DNA of 64,000 bases from the NCBI GenBank assembly GCA_965112735.1, contig OZ218960.1, positions 744,001-808,000 on the forward strand, in the 5' to 3' direction. A program made the position numbers and the translations under genes. Shown here piece after piece: positions 3,401 to 13,416 of the stretch. The notes beneath the pieces were generated by a model. The model was not told where the DNA came from. It saw only the letters and a program-made list of their open reading frames with translations, and searched no databases. This DNA comes from Phaeosaccion multiseriatum (Eukaryota > Protista > Ochrophyta, other classes). Each line of letters begins with the position of its first letter. Position 1 is the first letter of the stretch.

Positions 3401-6079
3401 TACCACCGCTGCCGCAGCTGCCTCCCCCCTGCTGAAGACCCAGAAAGAGGTACCTTCCAACGTTGAAGGTGAGCAAAAGACGTCCCACCCACCCGCGCTC
3501 ACAAGCGTCGTTCACGTCGGGCATGTGGGTGGGCGACCGGTCCAATGCATTGCCAAGGGGACCGTCCTATACAAGTGTATCAGATAGAGAGTCTGCGCTC
3601 TGCCTGGTGACGGCGATGGTGATGATGAATTGACGCCCACACCTTCCCCCACCTCATACCTTCTCTCCCGCCGTGCTTGCTTGTTGTATGTTATGCAGGA
3701 TCAAGGGGAGAAAAGAGAGGAAAGGGAAAGAGGAAGGGTGCCACCAGTCCGGGGATACGGCCTGTCGCCGGAGACTCCCTTGATGCCCTCTCTTGCGGTG
3801 GCAGTGGTGTCGCGACAAAGCCGAGCGCCTCCTCCTCCTCCTCGTCGTCCTCGCTCACCAGCAAGAGCAGCAGCAGAAGCAGTAGAACCAGCAGAACCAG
3901 CGCGGATGGGCGACTGCGGACCGGGGGTGGCCGCACCAGTGGTACTGGTAGCAGTGGTAGTACGCGTGGGGCCAGCGCATCTACGACGGAAACCCTCTCG
4001 CCCCTGTCCACTTCGAGGCCTTCGTCGGGAGGGAAGGGACGGCAGCGAGGGCTGGCGGCATTGACGACATTGACGACTGGTAGCGTCTTAGGTCTTGCTA
4101 CGCCTTCGCCAAAGCGCGGAAACACGCCCCCTGCTGCTCGGACCAAATCTGCGAAAGGCTCGTCGTCCACTACTTCGCGTACAGCCACCACCCCTCCTGC
4201 TGCTGCTGCTGCTGCTGTATCACCAACTGGTGCTGCTGCTCCTGGTCGACTGGCTGTGGTTCAAACGGAGGAAAGCAAGAGAGGAGGAGGACGACCAGAA
4301 GAGGAGGCACGGGAAGGAGAAGGAAGAGGAGGAGCAAGGACCGGGAAAGAAGGGGCGGCGGGAGGGGGAGGAGGAACAGAAAAACATGTGTGGGAGAGCT
4401 TGAGGACGATGGCGAAGGCAGCAGCTGGCGACGACGAGGAGGAGGAGGAGGAGGAGGAGAAGAAGGGGGAGGAAAAGGAGAGAGGGGGGGGGGGAGGCAG
4501 TCGTGTGGAGCAACGGGGCCCTGAGATCGCTGCCGAGGTGGGGGAGGAGAAGCGAGAGCGAGAGGAAGGAGCCGAGGGAGGCAATGATGGCCCTGCACCG
4601 GGACGGCAGGTCAGAGACCGAAGGAGGTCAAAGCCGATGGCCACTCCTACGCCAGCAGCAGCCTCTCTGTCTCCCTCTACACCTACTGTACCTTCTGGAC
4701 CCTCCGCGTCGTCCAAGAGTAAGGCAACAACAGGGAGGCCCAGGGGGGGGGGGAGACCGAGGAAGAACCCTCCACTGTCTGTGCTGCAGCAGCAGCAGCG
4801 GCAGCAGCAGTTGGTGGTACAGCAGGAGCAACAGCAGCAGTCACAGCAGCAGGAGGAGGAGTCAAAGCCGGAGCTTGGTACGGTTGAGAAGAAGAGAAGG
4901 GGGAGGAAAGTGCAAAAGGAGAAGGAGAAGGAGAAGGGTGCTGTGGGTGCCAAGGGATCCGTCGGTGGTGACGCCAATCATATGCAGCAGGGGGGGGGGC
5001 TGAAGACACCGCGTAGGGGCCGCAAAGATGATGGTGATGATGATGATGATGATGATGATGATGAGATGGAAGAAGATGAGCTTGTCGTCAAACGCACAAG
5101 GAGTGGGCGGAAGTCCATGCCGGTGCTTGATTGGTGGAGAGGGCAGCGGCTGAGCCAGGACAGCGAGGGAGGCACTGCGGGAGTAGAGGACGGTACACCG
5201 GAACGTGGCTTGATGGGGGGGGGCAAAGGAGTCGTCAAGAGGAGGAAAGGGGGCAGGAAGGTGGAGACGGGCCAGGACGAGGACAGCGAACAGGAGAACA
5301 AGAATAAGAAGAGGAGGAGGAACAACAACAGCAAGAAGAAGAAGAAGCAGGAGGAGAAGGAGGAGGAGGAGGAGGAGGAGGAGGAGGAGGAGGAGGAAGG
5401 GGGAGGGCACGAGTATGAGGAGTCAGGTGATGGGCTGGGAAGGCCGTCATTGCGGAGGAGGCTAACGCGAGAGCGTGGCATTACAGCTGCCGTCCTCCCT
5501 ACCGGCGCCCCGCCCCCACCTGCTGCTGCTGCTGCTGCTGCTCCTGCCACCGGCAAGATGGCAGTCAATACTCGTGGGCGCTCTGCCGGTGGTAGTGGTG
5601 GTGGTGGTGGTGGTGGTGGTGTCGGTGGTGGTGCTGGCAGTGGGGGTAGCAGTGGGGGTAGCACGGTAATGGAGTGGACGGACGATGCCATTAGGGCCCT
5701 GAGCAAAGCGCATATGGCCACGGACACGAGAACGAGGAGCTTCTGGGCAGAGGTGGCGAAGCAGGTGGAAGGAAGGTGAGGGTTGACTTGAGTTGGGGGG
5801 GGAGGGAGGGAGGGAGGAGAGGGGAGAGGAGGGGAGGGAGGGAAGGAGAAGGAAGGGGAGGGGAGGGAGGAACAGTCGGAGGTCGAGGGGAGGGGTGGAG
5901 TGGGTGCTCTGGCACATTCTCTCTCGGAGCACATCTTGGCGTCAATTGATGGGAACGAACAGGAACGGGGCAGGCGTAGGCTTGCTGCCCCTGTGGTCTT
6001 CACACTTATCCTGTACACCGCATTGCCCTCCCCTCCTTGCCTTGCCGTACCCCGCCCTGTCGTTCGTTGTTTGCGATCG

Positions 6080-6110
<31 letters not shown>

Positions 6111-7286
6111 TTTGTCTTGTCTATGTTGTCGATTTGTTGTTTCAGGACCGCTCGTGAGTGTCAAGATCAGTGGTTTGCCAAGTTGGATATGCAAGCCACC
6201 GCAGCTCGATCGGGCAAAGGGACGGCAGCCAAAGGGGCAGGGAAAGGAAAAGGGAAAGGGGCAGCCAAAGGGAAAGGGAAAGGGGGAGAAAGGAAGGTCA
6301 AAGCTGAGGGTGACAAGCAGGGGGAGGAGGGTGTAGCAGACACAGCCACAGCAGCGCCAGCGACAAAGGGGGGGGCATCTGCTTGTGAGGCACTTGACAC
6401 CACGGAAGGAATAGGGGGGGTAGGAGGCGAGGGGAAGAAGGAGAAGAAGAAGGGCCTAAGCCTCGGCCGCCTCCAAACCAAGGAGAGAAGCAAGTTCCTC
6501 CAGACGCAGTTTACAGGCTCTGACGATCTCTTTGCCAAGACGCCGGTGGCGGCAAGAAAGAGGAAACGGGCACAGGCAATCAAGACGAGCGGCAACGAGA
6601 ATGAGAACGAGAGAGAGGACGAAGAGGGAGGGGCGGGGGAAGGGGCGTTGGCCTTCTACCGCGACGGGGGTGGGGAGTCCACGCTGCCCGATCTCACCCC
6701 CGTCCTGCCTACCACAGCCAAGAAGAAAGCCCGCCGCAGGGGCTTGCTGACTTCAGGGAGCGAGGGTGAAGAGGAGGAGGAGGAGGATGAGGAGGAGGAC
6801 GGGAGTGGACCGCGTGGTGGTCACAACCCCCGAGGGACGGCTGCTGCTGCTGGTGGTGGTGGAGGTGGTGGTAGCGTGGTGGATATCGCTGGCTACAATA
6901 GAGGAGTCAGCCGAACGTATATTGCAGCCGTGTCGAAGAAGCTCAATGCCAAGCCGGGAAGGGGGAGGGGAAAGAGAAAGACGGCACCAGGGAGGACCCA
7001 GAAGGACGCCATCGGAGGGGGGGGAGGACGCAAGGCTGGCGGTGGTGGTGGCGCCGCTACCAGTGTTGCGAGGTCTTTGGCGAAGGTCCGTGCGAAGGTC
7101 AAGGACACTTCGGAGGCAGGGGGTTTCCGTCTCAACGCTTCGGTGGCGCCCTCGGGACATGTCCACGTGGAGGCAGAAGCCGCCGAGAGTGATATGGAGG
7201 CGGAGGAGGAGAGGAGGGGCGGCAGTAGTAGTAGTAGTAGTAGTAGTGGTAACAGTAGTAGCAGTAGCAGTAGTGATGGTGAGTGA
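1..7286 (+). CDS. KNL2: KNL2/Mis18BP1-like centromere licensing protein (5' end outside window); exons <1-1592, 1869-3468, 3699-5775, 6146-7286
   Basis: The reading frame is open from the window start and the three GT-AG introns are phase-consistent. Motifs: CENP-C-like RTRSGRKSMPVLDWWRGQRL (~5093-5152); SANT/Myb domain EWTDDAIRALSKAH...FWAEVAKQVEGR|TARECQDQWF split by intron 5776-6145; FLQTQFTGSDDLFAKTP, resembling the DDFFSTTP motif of M18BP1. The SANTA domain is not seen and is expected upstream of the window. Confidence 0.75.
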
Positions 7287-7508
7287 AGCGAGAAGCGAGC
7301 GACACATGGATGGGTGGATGGACTGGATGGGTGGCAATGGATGGATCGCCCCCGAAGATGGGCAACTTATTCAGGGGATACGGCGAACAAACGAGCGGGT
7401 GAGGAGGGTAAATAACCGGGAGACCGGTGTTGTTGATACTCCATGGCACTGATCAATTTTTTATCTATTGATGACCGGTTTTGGTGGGGCGAGATGCCCC
7501 ACTCGGTG

Positions 7509-7570
7509 AAAGTGGGTATTTTTAGTACCCAATTTTTTTAAAAGTGGGTATTTTTAGTACAGTACCCAAT
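7509..7570. repeat. Duplicated 20-bp subterminal repeat AAAGTGGGTATTTTTAGTAC
   Basis: Exact copies at 7509-7528 and 7541-7560, with a TGGGTA...TACCCA dyad. Confidence 0.85.
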
Positions 7571-7708
7571 ATGGACCAGTAGCGCCCCTCCCCCCCCCCC
7601 TCCTTTTTGGTGTATCTCTCCCCTCCTCCTCCAAAATATACTACGCTATGATATGACGATTTAATGGTATTACCACGATAACAATGGTATTCATATTTAC
7701 AGACACAC

Positions 7709-8093
7709 TTAGTGTCCGTCCTCAATCATGCATGGCATACAGTAGTAGTCAAAATCGCCTTCCGCAAAACCCTTGCTGTCGCAAAACTCGACGGTGCACA
7801 TGTGGTGCACGAGGTTTCCACACGCTCTTTCGGATGGGCAGAGGAACAGCTTGACTTGCGAGGGCTTAGTACAGCCATACGAGCATGTGAAGGCCATGTC
7901 TCCCTCTCTCAAGCCGCCCAACGACGGCGCTGCTGACGCGGCAGCAGCGGCAGTAGCGGCCGCAGCGGCCGCATCAGAGGCAGCAGCAGAAGCAGCATCA
8001 GAAGCAGTACCAGTACCAGTACGCTGTTTTTTTTGGGCCCCCCTTCCCCCACCCCTTCCTCCTCGTCCTCCTCCGGCTCCGCCTCCTCCTGTT

Positions 8094-8130
<37 letters not shown>

Positions 8131-10772
8131 TGCTGCTGCCACCTCCCTCCTCGTCGTCCTCTGCACCGCTATCACCTCCATCCCCCTCCTTCGACTCGTC
8201 TGCACCAGTGCCACTTTCCTTCGCCCTCGCCCGCTTCGCCCGTTTTTTCGCGTCCGCCTGCTGCGCGCTCCATAAATTATACACGGTGGTCCACACCAGC
8301 TGATTGAAGCGGCGCTTGTGAGAATCAGAACGAGACTTGATGTCAAAGGCGTCTTTGACTGCGTCAAACATGCTTCGCGCTTCTTCAAGCGTCGGCTTGT
8401 CCTTCCAGAGCCCCTTTTCTTTCGCCGCGGATTCAATCGCACCCATCAAACAGCAAAATTTTGACATCCTTCGCTTCTCCGCCCTCCCCTGCACGTCTGC
8501 TGTCGTGAATTCTCGAAGGCGAGGAGTGCCTGTCATCCAAGCATCCCAAGCAGCGCGCACAGTGAAGCTAGGGACCTCAAAGTGCTCGGGAAGGGTATGC
8601 CACCGGCCGTTGTAGAGATACAGAGGTGGCTGATCTGCACCTGCACAAGAAGAAGAAGAGGGCGGGGCGCTGCTCGAACCCTCACCAAGGCCCAGAGTGC
8701 CTGCCTGGTGAGCCGCGAGAAGGTCGCTGAGCCCACTCTTAGAAAAGGCTGCGTCGAGGGTCGTCTGCAGGGCCCTGCTCACACCCAGACTGGTGACAGT
8801 GCCAGAGGCCTGTGCATTCTCCTCCAGAACGTCACGGATCAGCGTCTCCAAGTCGACCTTGATCGTCTGGCCCAACACCTCAAGCTTGCCGCCTAGAGAG
8901 GCCACGCTGTCCGCCACGACTTGGAATTGCCTCAGCTGCACGACGTGGTGAGGAATCCCGGTTGCAGAAATCTCGTCCGTCTCGTCCGGATACTTCAGCA
9001 CGACATGCTCTGAAAGGTCCGCCAGCAACCTTTGATCTCGGAAGAGCTGTGTCGTGAAAAGAGGGTGATTCTCCTGAAGAGTGCTGCGCAGAAAGCCGGC
9101 GTGGTACACCACACTGGCAAGACAGAATTCAGCCACCTTCCTCAATCTCAGCGGCACGTCCCTGAAGCAGCTCACAATGGCTCCCGCGAGCACGTCTTCA
9201 ATGCCCTCCTTCGCTGTGCCGTCCACCTTGAGGCGCTGAAAAAAGGGAGGAAGCAATGCAAACTCCTTCGCTGAGATGTTCGCGCCGGAGGCAGCCCGGC
9301 CCACATACTGATCTGCTGCATTGATGGGGTTGAAGTAGATGCCCTGCACGCCGGGAAGAGACCATCCCATTCGAAGTTGCACAGCAATTGGGTTGGGAGC
9401 AGCGGACGAGCCGCTTGTGACGTGCGAGGCAGCGCCCTTGCGCCCAGAATGAGTGCCGAGGTCCTCTGGAGTCAGCCCCATGCCTTCCAAAATGGACGAG
9501 TTCGCCGCCGCCGTACGTCTGAGGAAGCCGCAATACCTATCGTACTGATTGTTGCCAGCGAACAGCGCGTTCTTCTCAAAACCAAAGCTCAGGAGGTAAA
9601 CACCAAGCGCGAGGACGGGGCAGATCTCCGGCATGATTGGATTCGCGTAGACGTGGCGAGGATGTCGGGCCTTCTCTCCCAGCTGATCGCCCTTTTGCTT
9701 CCCAAAATAGACGCAGAGCGCGTCCCCCTTCCACTCGAGATGATCGAGACAAATCTCCACACAGTTGGTGGCGCGGCACATCAGATTCCAGGAGAGAACG
9801 AGGAAGGGGTGGCCAAAGGCGCCCTGTCTGTGCCCGTTCTCACAGACTGCCGAGCTCAGCATTGCTGCGATGTACACAAGCGAAGGAAACAGTGGCAACC
9901 AAAGACGGCGTCAGGGCTAGGAAGTGAGTGGGGGGCATTCAATGCATCAGCCACTTGTCTCCACCCACTCCACTAGTTTCCACTGTCCACTGACTCCACA
10001 CAGCTGGGAATTTACCTTTGGCAAGAGCGCGGTAGAGAGCGAACGGCATGGGAGCCTTCCCTTCTCTGACTTCGACATTTCCCTCCTGCTTCTCTCCTGC
10101 GATCGTCCTCTTCAGCCCCTTGGTGAGCGTCGCAAGGTCGCTTTGCAATTTGCGGTGCTGTTCCTCCTGATGGTAGTCTCTGTACAGATTGAAGAGTGCA
10201 GAGCGTTTCGACTGTGCACCGGCCTTGGATAAGCCCTTCGGCCCCTTCTTGACTTCAAGCAGCCACCCGAAGAACGCGTCGGCTGTCAGCAGATGGAACA
10301 GCAAAGGGTGCGGCGCCCGAGGTGCTTGGATCAAGTGTGCCTTCACCCGCTTCGTCCACTGCGCCTCAGCCTTCTTCTTGGCCTTTGCTTGGGCTTTCGC
10401 TGCTCTCGACACCTCAGCCGGCGTCTGCTGTGCCGCTGCAGTGGCACCACCCGCTCCGCCAGGTGCGGCGGCTGCTGCGGCTGCTGCTGCTCTCCTCTGT
10501 GCTTCCTCCTCTTCCCCATCTTCCCCGTCTTCCTCCTCTTCCCCTTCCGGTGGAGCAAATGCTGTCCTGAAGTCAGGGTCCAGAAGCTCCGGGTGCTTGC
10601 GGAAGAGGTATCGGATCAGCATGGTGGAGGCGCATGCATATCCACTTCTCGAGCGTGGGGCGATGGTGTTGTTTCGGAGGTTCTGAATCTGCTGCTGCTC
10701 TGCAGTAAGCGGTGCTTCTTCCCCCTCTGCTGCTGGTGCTTCCGGAACCGTAGCAACAGCGACGTCAGCCAT
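7709..10772 (-). CDS. Crypton tyrosine recombinase with C-terminal PHD-like finger, 970 aa; exons 10772-10016 and 9864-7709
   Basis: Two ORFs join in frame across a 151-bp GT-AG intron (10015-9865), giving ...LYRALAKAMLSSAV...GHPFLVLSWNLMCR. The catalytic set is intact: R (NLMCR), K (KQKGDQ), HxxR (DLGTHSGRKGAA), W (LRMGW), Y (GVQGIY). Confidence 0.88.
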
Positions 10773-10953
10773 GGTATGCTCTGTTCTCCTGCAAATTCAC
10801 GTGGGAGATGCCCCTCCCACCACTGGCATCAGCTGTTACAGCCGGGTATCGTCCGCGCAGCCGCTGCTCCTCTTACATAGCTGCCCTGTGCAAATATGCT
10901 GATGCTGTGAATGAATAAAAATCCATGTGGGGAGGGGGGGGAGAATGCCCCAC

Positions 10954-10989
10954 AACCAAAAAATATTGGATAACCAAAAAATATTGGAT
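10954..10989. repeat. Tandem 18-bp subterminal repeat AACCAAAAAATATTGGAT x2
   Basis: Exact copies at 10954-10971 and 10972-10989, with a CCAA...TTGG dyad. Confidence 0.85.
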
Positions 10990-11399
10990 AAAAAACTTGA
11001 AAAACGAGCATTTGTGGCCCATAAAATATCCAAAACCATAATTTCGTGGGGCAGGTGCCCCACATCACGGTACTATTAGACATACGGACTACAGAGAACT
11101 GAAATTAAATGTGATGAATCGACCAAAAATGATCTGCGAAGAATGCACACACCCTCGCACCCACTCACCACCATAGGACCATAAGACTCTGTGCCTTCAC
11201 CTCCCCATAAGACTCTCTATGTCTCCAGGTCCCTCGGTCAACGCGACGTGTGCAGGGGCGCCACTGCTCGCGAGCCTCTCCCTTCATCATGTGTCATGCA
11301 TGTGCGTGTGTGTGTGCGTGTGTGTGTGCGTGCGTGGGTGCGTACCAGCTTCTTTCTCAGGCACTGACCCACTGACCGTGTAAGTACACGACAAGCCCG

Positions 11400-13416
11400 C
11401 TATTGCGGCGACGGTGGCGGTAGCGGGGGTAGCATACCACAGTCTGTGATGACCACGGAACTTTTGGGGCTGTTGGCCACGCCCCCCACGGACATCTTGT
11501 CTATACGGTACAGCACGTCCGCCTCCTCCTCGTCCTCCACCCGCCCGAACGCAACGTAACGATCATCTGCCCATCCAGCGTCCCTGCCATGTGTGTATGT
11601 GTATGTGTGTGTGTGTATGTGTGTGTTTTATGCGTGTGTGTGTGTGCGTGTGTGTGTGCGTGTGTGTGTGTTGAGCTGTGAGATCCTTCCATCACAATAG
11701 GCGCGGAGAGAGACAGAGAGACACCGAAAGAGGAAGGGAGAGAGACAGGAGACAGACAGAGACACAAAGAGAGGGACGGAGGGATAGGAAGCGCACCTTT
11801 GTAGGTTGATAAAGAACCTTGAGTCCACCTTGCCGTCCAAGCCCCTCGCCATGCTCAGCAGGCCTCCTGCTCGATGCTGCTCAGGGGGTGGGGATACGGG
11901 AACACGCACACACACATACATACATGTTCACACACACACAAGCACACATACATACACAAGATAAAGGGCACGCCACCGAGGGTATACAAACGCAAGGGGG
12001 GCAGGACAGCAACGCGCGTTAGCTTGCTACGTGACATACACTTCGACACACACAAGCAGGGCACACTCGAAGCTGGGGTTAGAAAAGGGGGCGAGCGGCG
12101 CTCAAAGAGAACACTAGCCTCTCTCCTTAGGCTCTCTCCGTCGTCAGGGTACATCACTGGTCTCGCAGAAGCGACATACAGGAGAGGAGGAGTGGTGGTG
12201 GTGGTGGTATGTCAGCCCCTCCCCTCCCAGATGCACACACGTGCTTCGTAGAAGATCGAAGACCATGGCACGACCACCCTTCACCACCGAAGGGCCGCTC
12301 GCCTTCCCTCCTCTGGTGGGTGTACGGTTCGCAAAGCCACAGATGGCTGCGACTTGAGCTCTCGTAAGAGAGGTTTGACACTGAACAACAGTACACCCCG
12401 CCACGACTCCTCTTTCCTTCCACACCGTACCTTAATGTCATAGTTCTCGGGGTCGAAGGGCTCGCCTGTCGAAGAAGTTCCTGTTTTGGCCTTGCCCCCC
12501 CCCCCGATAGCTCCGGCCTGCATGCTGAGCCCTTTGACCACTCTATAAAAAGTGGTTCCCTTGTAACTCACTCCAGCGGGATTGTCTCCCGTAATTAGGG
12601 CCTCGAAATTGGCAACGGTAATCGGGGTAGCTTTGCCGTAGAGCTATGGTTATTGACAGACAGTAGCAATAGCAGCAGCAGCAGCAGTAGCAGCAGCAGC
12701 AGCGGCAGGAGGGAGGCAGGTATTGCGCAGGTTTGAAGTGGTCTTTTCTTGCGCTGGGATGCTGAGGTAGCTTGCCAGCTTCAACAAACCTCCTCCATCC
12801 ATTGCCCACTCACCTTGATCTTGATAGTACCGGCTTCCTTTCCATCAATTGCGATGGTCATGTAGGCCCTGCTGGTGACCTCCGGCTCTATCCAGCCCGG
12901 CATTTCCCCGCCCTTCACGTCTTTGGCTGGAATGGCGTTCTTGGCGGAATCGGGCTGGTTCGTGAGATTTAGGCCTTCTGCAGCAGATGCCGAGGGCGGC
13001 TGCGAGCCATTGAGACTACCACCGCTGTTCCAGACATGCCCTCCCACTAGTCCAGCAGCTGCAGCAGAGAGGACCTGGTCCACCATACGGCGGCGACTCA
13101 CTACTACACAACTCCCGCCCTGCCGTGCTCGTCTGTTCTGTGGCTGCTTGCGAGATTCGCTTCGCTCATTTCCAGCAGACCGCTCTGCCGCAGCAGCGCC
13201 TGCCGCACCGGAAACTGTAGGAACAATCCCCTCATCCCCTGCTGCCACCCCGCGCTTGAAGACGCTCGACGACAGCAGGCTTTGCTCTCGCTGTGTCTCG
13301 CGCGAATGCCCCCGCGCAGCTGACCGGAGAGAAGAAGACACTAGGGTAGGGGTGAAGGCATTCGTCTCGCTCGCTATCAGAGCACTGCACGCGAGGATCA
13401 CCGCAACTCTCGCCAT
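11400..13416 (-). CDS. Cyclophilin-type peptidyl-prolyl isomerase, plastid/thylakoid-lumen targeted, 359 aa; exons 13416-12814, 12643-12431, 11876-11797, 11583-11400
   Basis: Motifs: VTSRAYMTIAIDGKEAGTIKIKLYGKATPITVANF, SYKGTTFYRVV, GLLSMAR...SRFFI, WADDRYVAFGRV, VVITDCGML. The spliced length is 1080 nt and in frame. The N-terminal signal peptide is followed by NA|FTP, then an RR-hydrophobic-ASA segment. Confidence 0.9.

Follow-up and report, generated by a model that had tools for sequence, protein, structure and literature searches.

How does a tyrosine recombinase gene come to end in a finger-like cluster of cysteines and histidines, and what kind of element carries it? The question is raised by a locus of the ochrophyte Phaeosaccion multiseriatum, lying in a 64,000-nt stretch of contig OZ218960.1 (positions 744,001 to 808,000; the whole stretch is hereafter called the window, and all positions are counted within it). 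An earlier note, made from the letters alone, had described here an intact Crypton recombinase fused to a PHD-like finger, and had proposed that it could be a chromatin-guided integrase. In our assessment, the locus is probably an autonomous transposon of the CryptonS type with a single two-exon gene, to which a zinc finger of the PHD-type C4HC3 order was added in this lineage. The recombinase is of an already known type, while its fusion to a Cys/His tail is a new architecture when compared to the relatives that were retrieved and to the literature that was searched.

A recombinase of the CryptonS type

The gene is found on the minus strand, as two open reading frames (ORFs; 10772-9939 and 9898-7709) joined across a 151-nt GT..AG intron (10015-9865), the spliced frame of 2913 nt consisting of 970 codons and a stop, with zero internal stops. 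When contigs of four public runs (X1, X4, X5, and X6) were compared to positions 7450-11100, an identical skip of 151 nt (9864 to 10016, CT..AC on the plus strand) was present in contigs of X5 and X6, in agreement with the uninterrupted 970-aa protein, after removal of one intron, of the earlier note. Within 7465-11100, all other long ORFs stem from simple sequence read in antisense or out of frame. The recombinase is the sole gene of the element, and no reverse transcriptase or DDE transposase is encoded.

As to the identity of the protein, a homology search with the exon-2 protein as the query (cut-off E<=1e-3) recovered 155 homologs with a top identity of 39%, among them proteins of Phytophthora, Aphanomyces, diatoms, and chytrids, along with many metagenomic ones of about 700 aa. 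Of these relatives, 120 were retrieved for closer comparison, 86 of them matching the N-terminal exon. In the family alignment (A1, 82 sequences), R283, K310, H391, R394, W420, and Y429 are invariant or more than 90% conserved, so that the full catalytic set (R, K, HxxR, W, Y) named in the earlier note is indeed present, and the consensus reads LGTHSxRKGAA ... LRAGW ... VQDRY, with a W-to-Y spacing of 9 residues.

Sequence profiles were blind to the recombinase fold, and structure comparison alone revealed it. Pfam searches with the 729-aa ORF and with four separate pieces produced sub-threshold matches only (SAM_4, DUF5524, DUF6197), the weak match to Phage_int_SAM_4 (E 0.04) falling in exon 1, and the family profile found no recombinase among the PDB sequences. 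For aa 253-800, an AlphaFold model based on A1 reaches a predicted local distance difference test (pLDDT) score of 89.8 and a predicted template modeling (pTM) score of 0.84, and of its 50 best Foldseek matches, 46 are to tyrosine recombinases or to Ndc10, itself derived from a recombinase. In VIA-align, the best match is Flp of the yeast 2-micron plasmid (Z 14.9 over 216 aa, 3.4 A), followed by Ndc10 (Z 12.8), an archaeal Xer (Z 11.8), and Cre (Z 11.7), and thus the Cre/Flp/Ndc10 fold that had been suspected for this region was recovered. Flp also has in common with the protein a nucleophile Tyr, as well as a Trp where the second His would be, even though sequence identity of the catalytic domain to Flp and Ndc10/Cbf2 is about 10%; Flp, however, possesses neither the CryptonS C-terminal region nor a finger, and Ndc10 has lost catalysis. 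In the ESM Atlas, the nearest shapes are oomycete and diatom clusters, followed by a diatom cluster with GCR1_C.

The CryptonS group comprises stramenopile Cryptons that lack GCR1_C and possess a conserved C-terminal region (Kojima and Jurka, 2011; PMC3212892). The gene in the window resembles the CryptonS of oomycetes and diatoms in being a single tyrosine-recombinase gene of a stramenopile host, in possessing the conserved C-terminal region and having no Pfam match to GCR1_C, and in the motifs LGTHSxRKG, RxGW, and VQxxY (PMC3212892). Measured against this published description of the group, the protein is a tyrosine recombinase of the CryptonS type, as demonstrated by homology, by the conserved catalytic residues, and by the Flp/Ndc10/Cre fold; the stramenopile CryptonS signature recognized earlier is upheld by homology, motifs, C-terminal region, and absence of GCR1_C alike. 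Most of the metagenomic relatives are found on contigs of 2.3-3.1 kb, approximately one element long, as expected of collapsed repeats or circular forms.

The C-terminal tail

Homology of the relatives stops at query aa 780-788, no more than 25 residues before their own C-termini, whereas the protein in the window continues for about 180 aa past this conserved end, through a linker of about 110 aa, to which no relative aligns, and into a terminal module of 58 aa. The Cys-rich tail is absent from all 120 of the retrieved relatives, and a fusion common among Cryptons, for which the earlier note had left room, is thus not what these relatives display. The linker with its basic patches (KKRAKRAR, QKKQR) is as described there, and the cluster at 7730-7885 does follow the C4HC3 order, with both coordinates and ligands confirmed (C913-x3-C917-x10-C928-x5-C934-x4-H939-x2-C942-x18-C961-x2-C964). 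The 70-aa tail contains 8 Cys, versus 13 in the remaining 900 aa. A relaxed C4HC3 pattern has one match in the six-frame translation of the window, this being the module itself, and turns up in 0.02% of cases when the same 62 residues are shuffled, the pattern having been relaxed after the sequence was seen. The tail is coding: its GC content at third codon positions (GC3) is 0.69, versus 0.70 for the catalytic domain, codon likelihood is best in its frame, and an AT-rich untranslated region (UTR; 7465-7708, GC 0.44) starts directly after the stop codon.

Which fold the module has is a separate question, and here we consider a PHD-type cross-brace the probable one, based on ligand order, local motifs, and language-model features. 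Four of the six ligand spacings are canonical for PHD, the exceptions being the C-x3-C of the first pair and the C-x5-C of the second, and local motifs are PHD-like as well, including a hydrophobic run ahead of the third Cys, V-H-x-x-C, and a terminal Y-x-C-x-x-C. In a protein-language-model search, the closest matches that have a name are all PHD clusters (0.84-0.90); with these PHD families removed, the best matches are another PHD family (0.77), RING (0.76), and UBR (0.76), all in the range of 0.76-0.77.

A number of results weigh against this assignment. The strict PHD spacing, C-x2-C-x(8-25)-C-x(2-4)-C-x(4-5)-H-x2-C-x(12-46)-C-x2-C, fails; of shuffled proteins, 4-10% attain the same language-model score of 0.90; and with 164 shared language-model features, the tail stays short of the 170 that true members of a family usually have. 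The 70-aa tail matches no Pfam family at E<=10, PF00628 included; a phmmer search with the tail against PDB sequences returned two chance matches only and no PHD chain; an exhaustive HMMER search against 1.84 billion representative proteins returned no true homolog, two matches being rejected as repeat-driven and belonging to unrelated proteins; and a word-indexed search limited to the tail found no homolog, its single candidate coming without a score. A single-sequence AlphaFold model of the tail is unreliable (pLDDT 44), as there are no homologs and hence no alignment to build on. Metagenome contigs do not contain a 30-mer taken from the finger, and a tblastn match of the tail at 36.5 kb in the window was rejected as simple sequence and not a finger. 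The PHD-like finger of the earlier note therefore stands as to its C4HC3 order, with the language-model features on its side, but not as to canonical spacing or a Pfam match.

An alternative that we regard as possible, if unlikely, is that the zinc finger in the tail is of a different kind and not a histone reader. It would then be either a DNA-binding module, targeting the subterminal palindromes or the repeats of the element (see below) much like the arm-binding domains of phage integrases, or a RING-variant acting in the SUMO/ubiquitin pathway. The C4HC3 order is likewise found in RING-CH, and readers of H3K4me3 (trimethyl-lysine) usually have a Trp between the fourth Cys and the His. None is present between C934 and H939, with F911, Y915, and F926 present, and along with the missing match to a PHD hidden Markov model this speaks for a different finger. 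The palindromes and repeats, needing a binding protein at both ends, fit the DNA-binding version, although for DNA binding there are candidates already, in the CryptonS C-terminal region and in the N-terminal domain. The ubiquitin-pathway version is favored by the presence of Ulp1 or OTU in relatives at the same position, and by the pairing of Ulp1 with PHD in transposases of Ginger1 and Mutator-like elements (MULEs; PMC2836005), but the RING and UBR clusters score 0.76 versus 0.84-0.90 for the PHD clusters, and the tail does not match the C3HC4 pattern of RING. As to the function of the module, we find it doubtful that it reads histone tails and steers Crypton integration.

Ends, copies, and apparent transcription of the mobile unit

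Contigs of X1, X4, and X5 either terminate at 7465 or part ways before 7462-7465, entering at least four unlike flanks besides the one present in the window, and the left end of the repeat unit is therefore placed at 7465. This end lies 244 bp beyond the stop codon, and the tail is therefore inside the mobile unit. As tail depth in X1 and X4 also equals that of the body, the finger must be carried by the whole family and not by one locus. Word depth of the element is in the thousands, and the window copy differs from the common form of all four runs by two coding differences only (K962M and P558H), suggesting that the copies are very young. K962M (7737) is inside the last CxxC of the finger, and P558H (8949) is in the family-wide motif GIPPH; with these two replacements, the window copy may be slightly impaired. 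Several copies are present at different sites, and the element is mobile and not domesticated; the single syntenic copy that, according to the earlier note, would indicate domestication is not what the unlike left flanks and the high depth reveal. One other copy, at the loose end of an X1 contig (7462), has a left flank with telomere-like repeats of the TTAGGG type (GGGTTAGGGTTA).

The two sides of the gene are marked by palindromes of the form GTGGGGC-N4/5-GCCCCAC, of which the window contains exactly two, with 0 expected from 100 shuffles. They were rejected as crossover sites, as their spacers differ in both length and sequence (GAGAT versus AGGT), and they are more likely protein-binding sites. 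Cryptons typically have terminal direct repeats of 5-6 bp, mostly TATGG, but neither TATGG nor long terminal repeats are found at the ends of the element. A second CTATT, identical to the one at the left end, was read from the sequence as a candidate right end, and CTATT at both junctions would be as expected under the Crypton model, with its core of 5 bp, but an X5 contig tells against this placement in being identical on through 11100, past the candidate. The element would thus measure about 3.6 kb, from 7465 to a right end between 11064 and slightly past 11100. Coordinates of all these features are collected in Table 1.

Table 1. Features of the element, with positions counted within the window
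Feature	Position	Strand	Remarks
Left end of mobile unit, CTATT	7465..7469		3' side of gene; contigs diverge there
Subterminal palindrome GTGGGGC-GAGAT-GCCCCAC	7484..7502		One of two matches in the window
Two exact 20-nt direct repeats, AAAGTGGGTATTTTTAGTAC	7509..7560		AT-rich 3' UTR
Exon 2	7709..9864	-	Stop codon at 7709-7711
C-terminal Cys/His module (PHD-like)	7712..7885	-	aa 913-970, 58 aa, C4HC3 order
Low-complexity linker	7922..8251	-	aa 791-900: basic patch, acidic run, poly-Ala, RGG repeats, second basic patch
Conserved C-terminal region of CryptonS-type proteins	8252..8659	-	aa 655-790; matched by 86 of 120 relatives
Tyrosine-recombinase catalytic domain	8987..9864	-	aa 253 to ~545
Y429	9335-9337	-	Catalytic residue
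W420	9362-9364	-	Catalytic residue
R394	9440-9442	-	Catalytic residue
H391	9449-9451	-	Catalytic residue; H391-x2-R394
K310	9692-9694	-	Catalytic residue
R283	9773-9775	-	Catalytic residue
Intron	9865..10015	-	151 nt, GT..AG
Exon 1	10016..10772	-	aa 1-252; N-terminal SAM-like/core-binding-type domain broken by acidic and Ala-rich insert
18-nt tandem duplication	10954..10989		5' region; single unit in other copies (18 letters left out in X4, X5)
Subterminal palindrome GTGGGGC-AGGT-GCCCCAC	11046..11063		Near 5' side of gene
Candidate right-end CTATT	11073..11077		Same as left-end CTATT; read from sequence

As to transcription, X1 and X4 must be genomic, with contigs of up to 254 kb, and their contigs keep the intron. 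X5, in turn, behaves as RNA: it yields a small assembly (34 Mb, with no contig longer than 14 kb), the intron is lost (intron depth of zero, joined contig depth of 2337), and directly beyond either edge of 7694-10865 its depth drops about 7-fold, whereas depth in X1 and X4 remains flat. An X5 contig at 7662-7970 covers the finger with 0 mismatches, and no single contig spans the simple-sequence linker at 7971-8158. No joint skipping the tail is reported in contigs of the four runs, nor did we find a contig in which transcripts would splice out or stop before the C-terminal domain, an outcome that the earlier note had considered. With X5 read as RNA, the gene is apparently transcribed and spliced as predicted, the transcript including the finger; counting against this is the label of X5, 'DNA?', given by guess, and if X5 is DNA, the expression claim loses its support. 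In X6 (organism B), from the same study, the element is more than 99% identical at a depth of 2-5, versus 2337 in X5, and this signal may represent bleed-through between libraries rather than a second host species.

The copy number also has a bearing on a second alternative, to which we give little credence, that the tail is a functionless recent accident, either a fragment captured from a host gene or the product of reading on into what used to be flanking sequence, spread by a burst of copying. The tail has no homolog in our searches, the linker is simple-sequence DNA, open by virtue of its composition, and the near-identical copies have left no time for selection to show; they are in fact too alike for selection on the tail to be measurable, which weighs against a functional finger as well. 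In addition, an X5 contig matches the linker side to 8240 (aa 794, linker start) and then joins unlike upstream sequence, which could belong to another subfamily or to the donor of the tail, possibly a gene. An accident, however, would hardly account for an ordered pattern of eight ligands, very rare by chance, at the extreme end of the frame, for the coding-type GC3 of the tail and an AT-rich UTR beginning straight after the stop codon, or for a family that has multiplied into many copies while retaining the tail. That we are dealing with a domesticated host gene of Crypton descent, as in the cases of ZMYM, KCTD1, or Ndc10, is very improbable: Crypton recombinases have repeatedly been domesticated and fused to zinc fingers (ZMYM genes; PMC3212892), but here the full catalytic set is present, subterminal palindromes lie on both sides of the gene, and the several unlike flanks at very high depth lead us to reject it.

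The element is flanked by the 3' end of a long low-complexity ORF (5793-7286, plus strand) and by an ORF resembling a cyclophilin fragment (12281-12571, minus strand; FYRVVKG), an orientation indicating a convergent intergenic location and not a promoter.

Accessory modules and the biology of Cryptons

Under the preferred explanation of a CryptonS-type transposon with an added zinc finger, many near-identical copies of the element would encode a protein in which a core-binding-type domain is followed by the Flp/Cre-fold catalytic domain, the helical CryptonS C-terminal region, a presumably disordered linker with NLS-like (nuclear localization signal) basic and RGG patches, and the 58-aa module, predicted to bind zinc. 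The element would move by excision and integration, the tyrosine recombinase acting site-specifically on a short core sequence (the Goodwin model), the subterminal palindromes would be bound by protein, and the tail would act as a cross-brace zinc finger tethering the recombinase to a chromatin partner. Such an accessory role may be similar to that of the Ulp1 and OTU domains found at the same position in relatives. One diatom relative (P0092) possesses a Ulp1/C48 domain after the same conserved end point (128 bits), and two others (P0049 and P0053) possess an OTU-like domain there (20-22 bits, just sub-threshold). An added Ulp1 (C48) protease is indeed known from some CryptonS members (PMC3212892), and the accessories known for Cryptons include DDE (MarCry), C48 peptidase, and HTH (helix-turn-helix; PMC13465315, 2026), while no mention of OTU on a Crypton was found in the literature examined. 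Likewise, no paper describing a PHD finger on a Crypton was found in the literature searched, in agreement with the earlier note, to which the architecture was not known as a described Crypton feature.

The element departs from typical CryptonS in other respects as well. Its copy number is apparently high, most Cryptons being low-copy, it has palindromes with 7-bp arms near both ends, and the usual TATGG termini are absent. Comparison can also be made to CryptonF-1_cRei of Chlamydomonas, an active element of rising copy number with a 5-bp core shared by end and target (Lopez-Cortegano et al., 2023; PMC9977147), which, unlike the element in the window, is of the CryptonF group and has GCR1_C, and to which no finger is attributed in the text consulted.

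Outside of Cryptons, the closest parallels are with Ginger1 and Mutator-like elements, in which OTU, Ulp1, and PHD domains are found at the C-terminus of the transposase, one Ginger1 family encoding both Ulp1 and PHD (Bao et al., 2010; PMC2836005). Those enzymes, however, are DDE transposases whose PHD is seen by standard profiles, whereas the element in the window pairs a tyrosine recombinase with a finger that Pfam does not recognize. A second parallel is presented by the chromoviruses (Ty3/Gypsy), whose integrase carries a C-terminal chromatin-reader on a flexible segment, the same idea being realized with a different class of enzyme and a different reader. The targeting role of the chromodomain in chromoviruses reportedly has experimental support.

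As Ulp1, OTU, and PHD recur at the C-terminus across transposition enzymes, this terminus appears as a recurrent docking place for modules. Modules of these types were acquired independently, at the same C-terminal position, by other classes of transposons, and by analogy this suggests that these elements share a need, during transposition, for contact with chromatin or with the SUMO/ubiquitin system. To our knowledge, no class of eukaryotic DNA transposons is less well understood than the Cryptons, and we know of no direct observation of their activity other than in Chlamydomonas. A young, multi-copy, and apparently expressed family with an intact recombinase is thus a good system for studying Crypton movement. 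If the finger does steer integration, this would be the first chromatin-guided Crypton, a natural site-specific recombinase tethered to a chromatin mark, and as such it would be of interest to designers of targeted recombinases.

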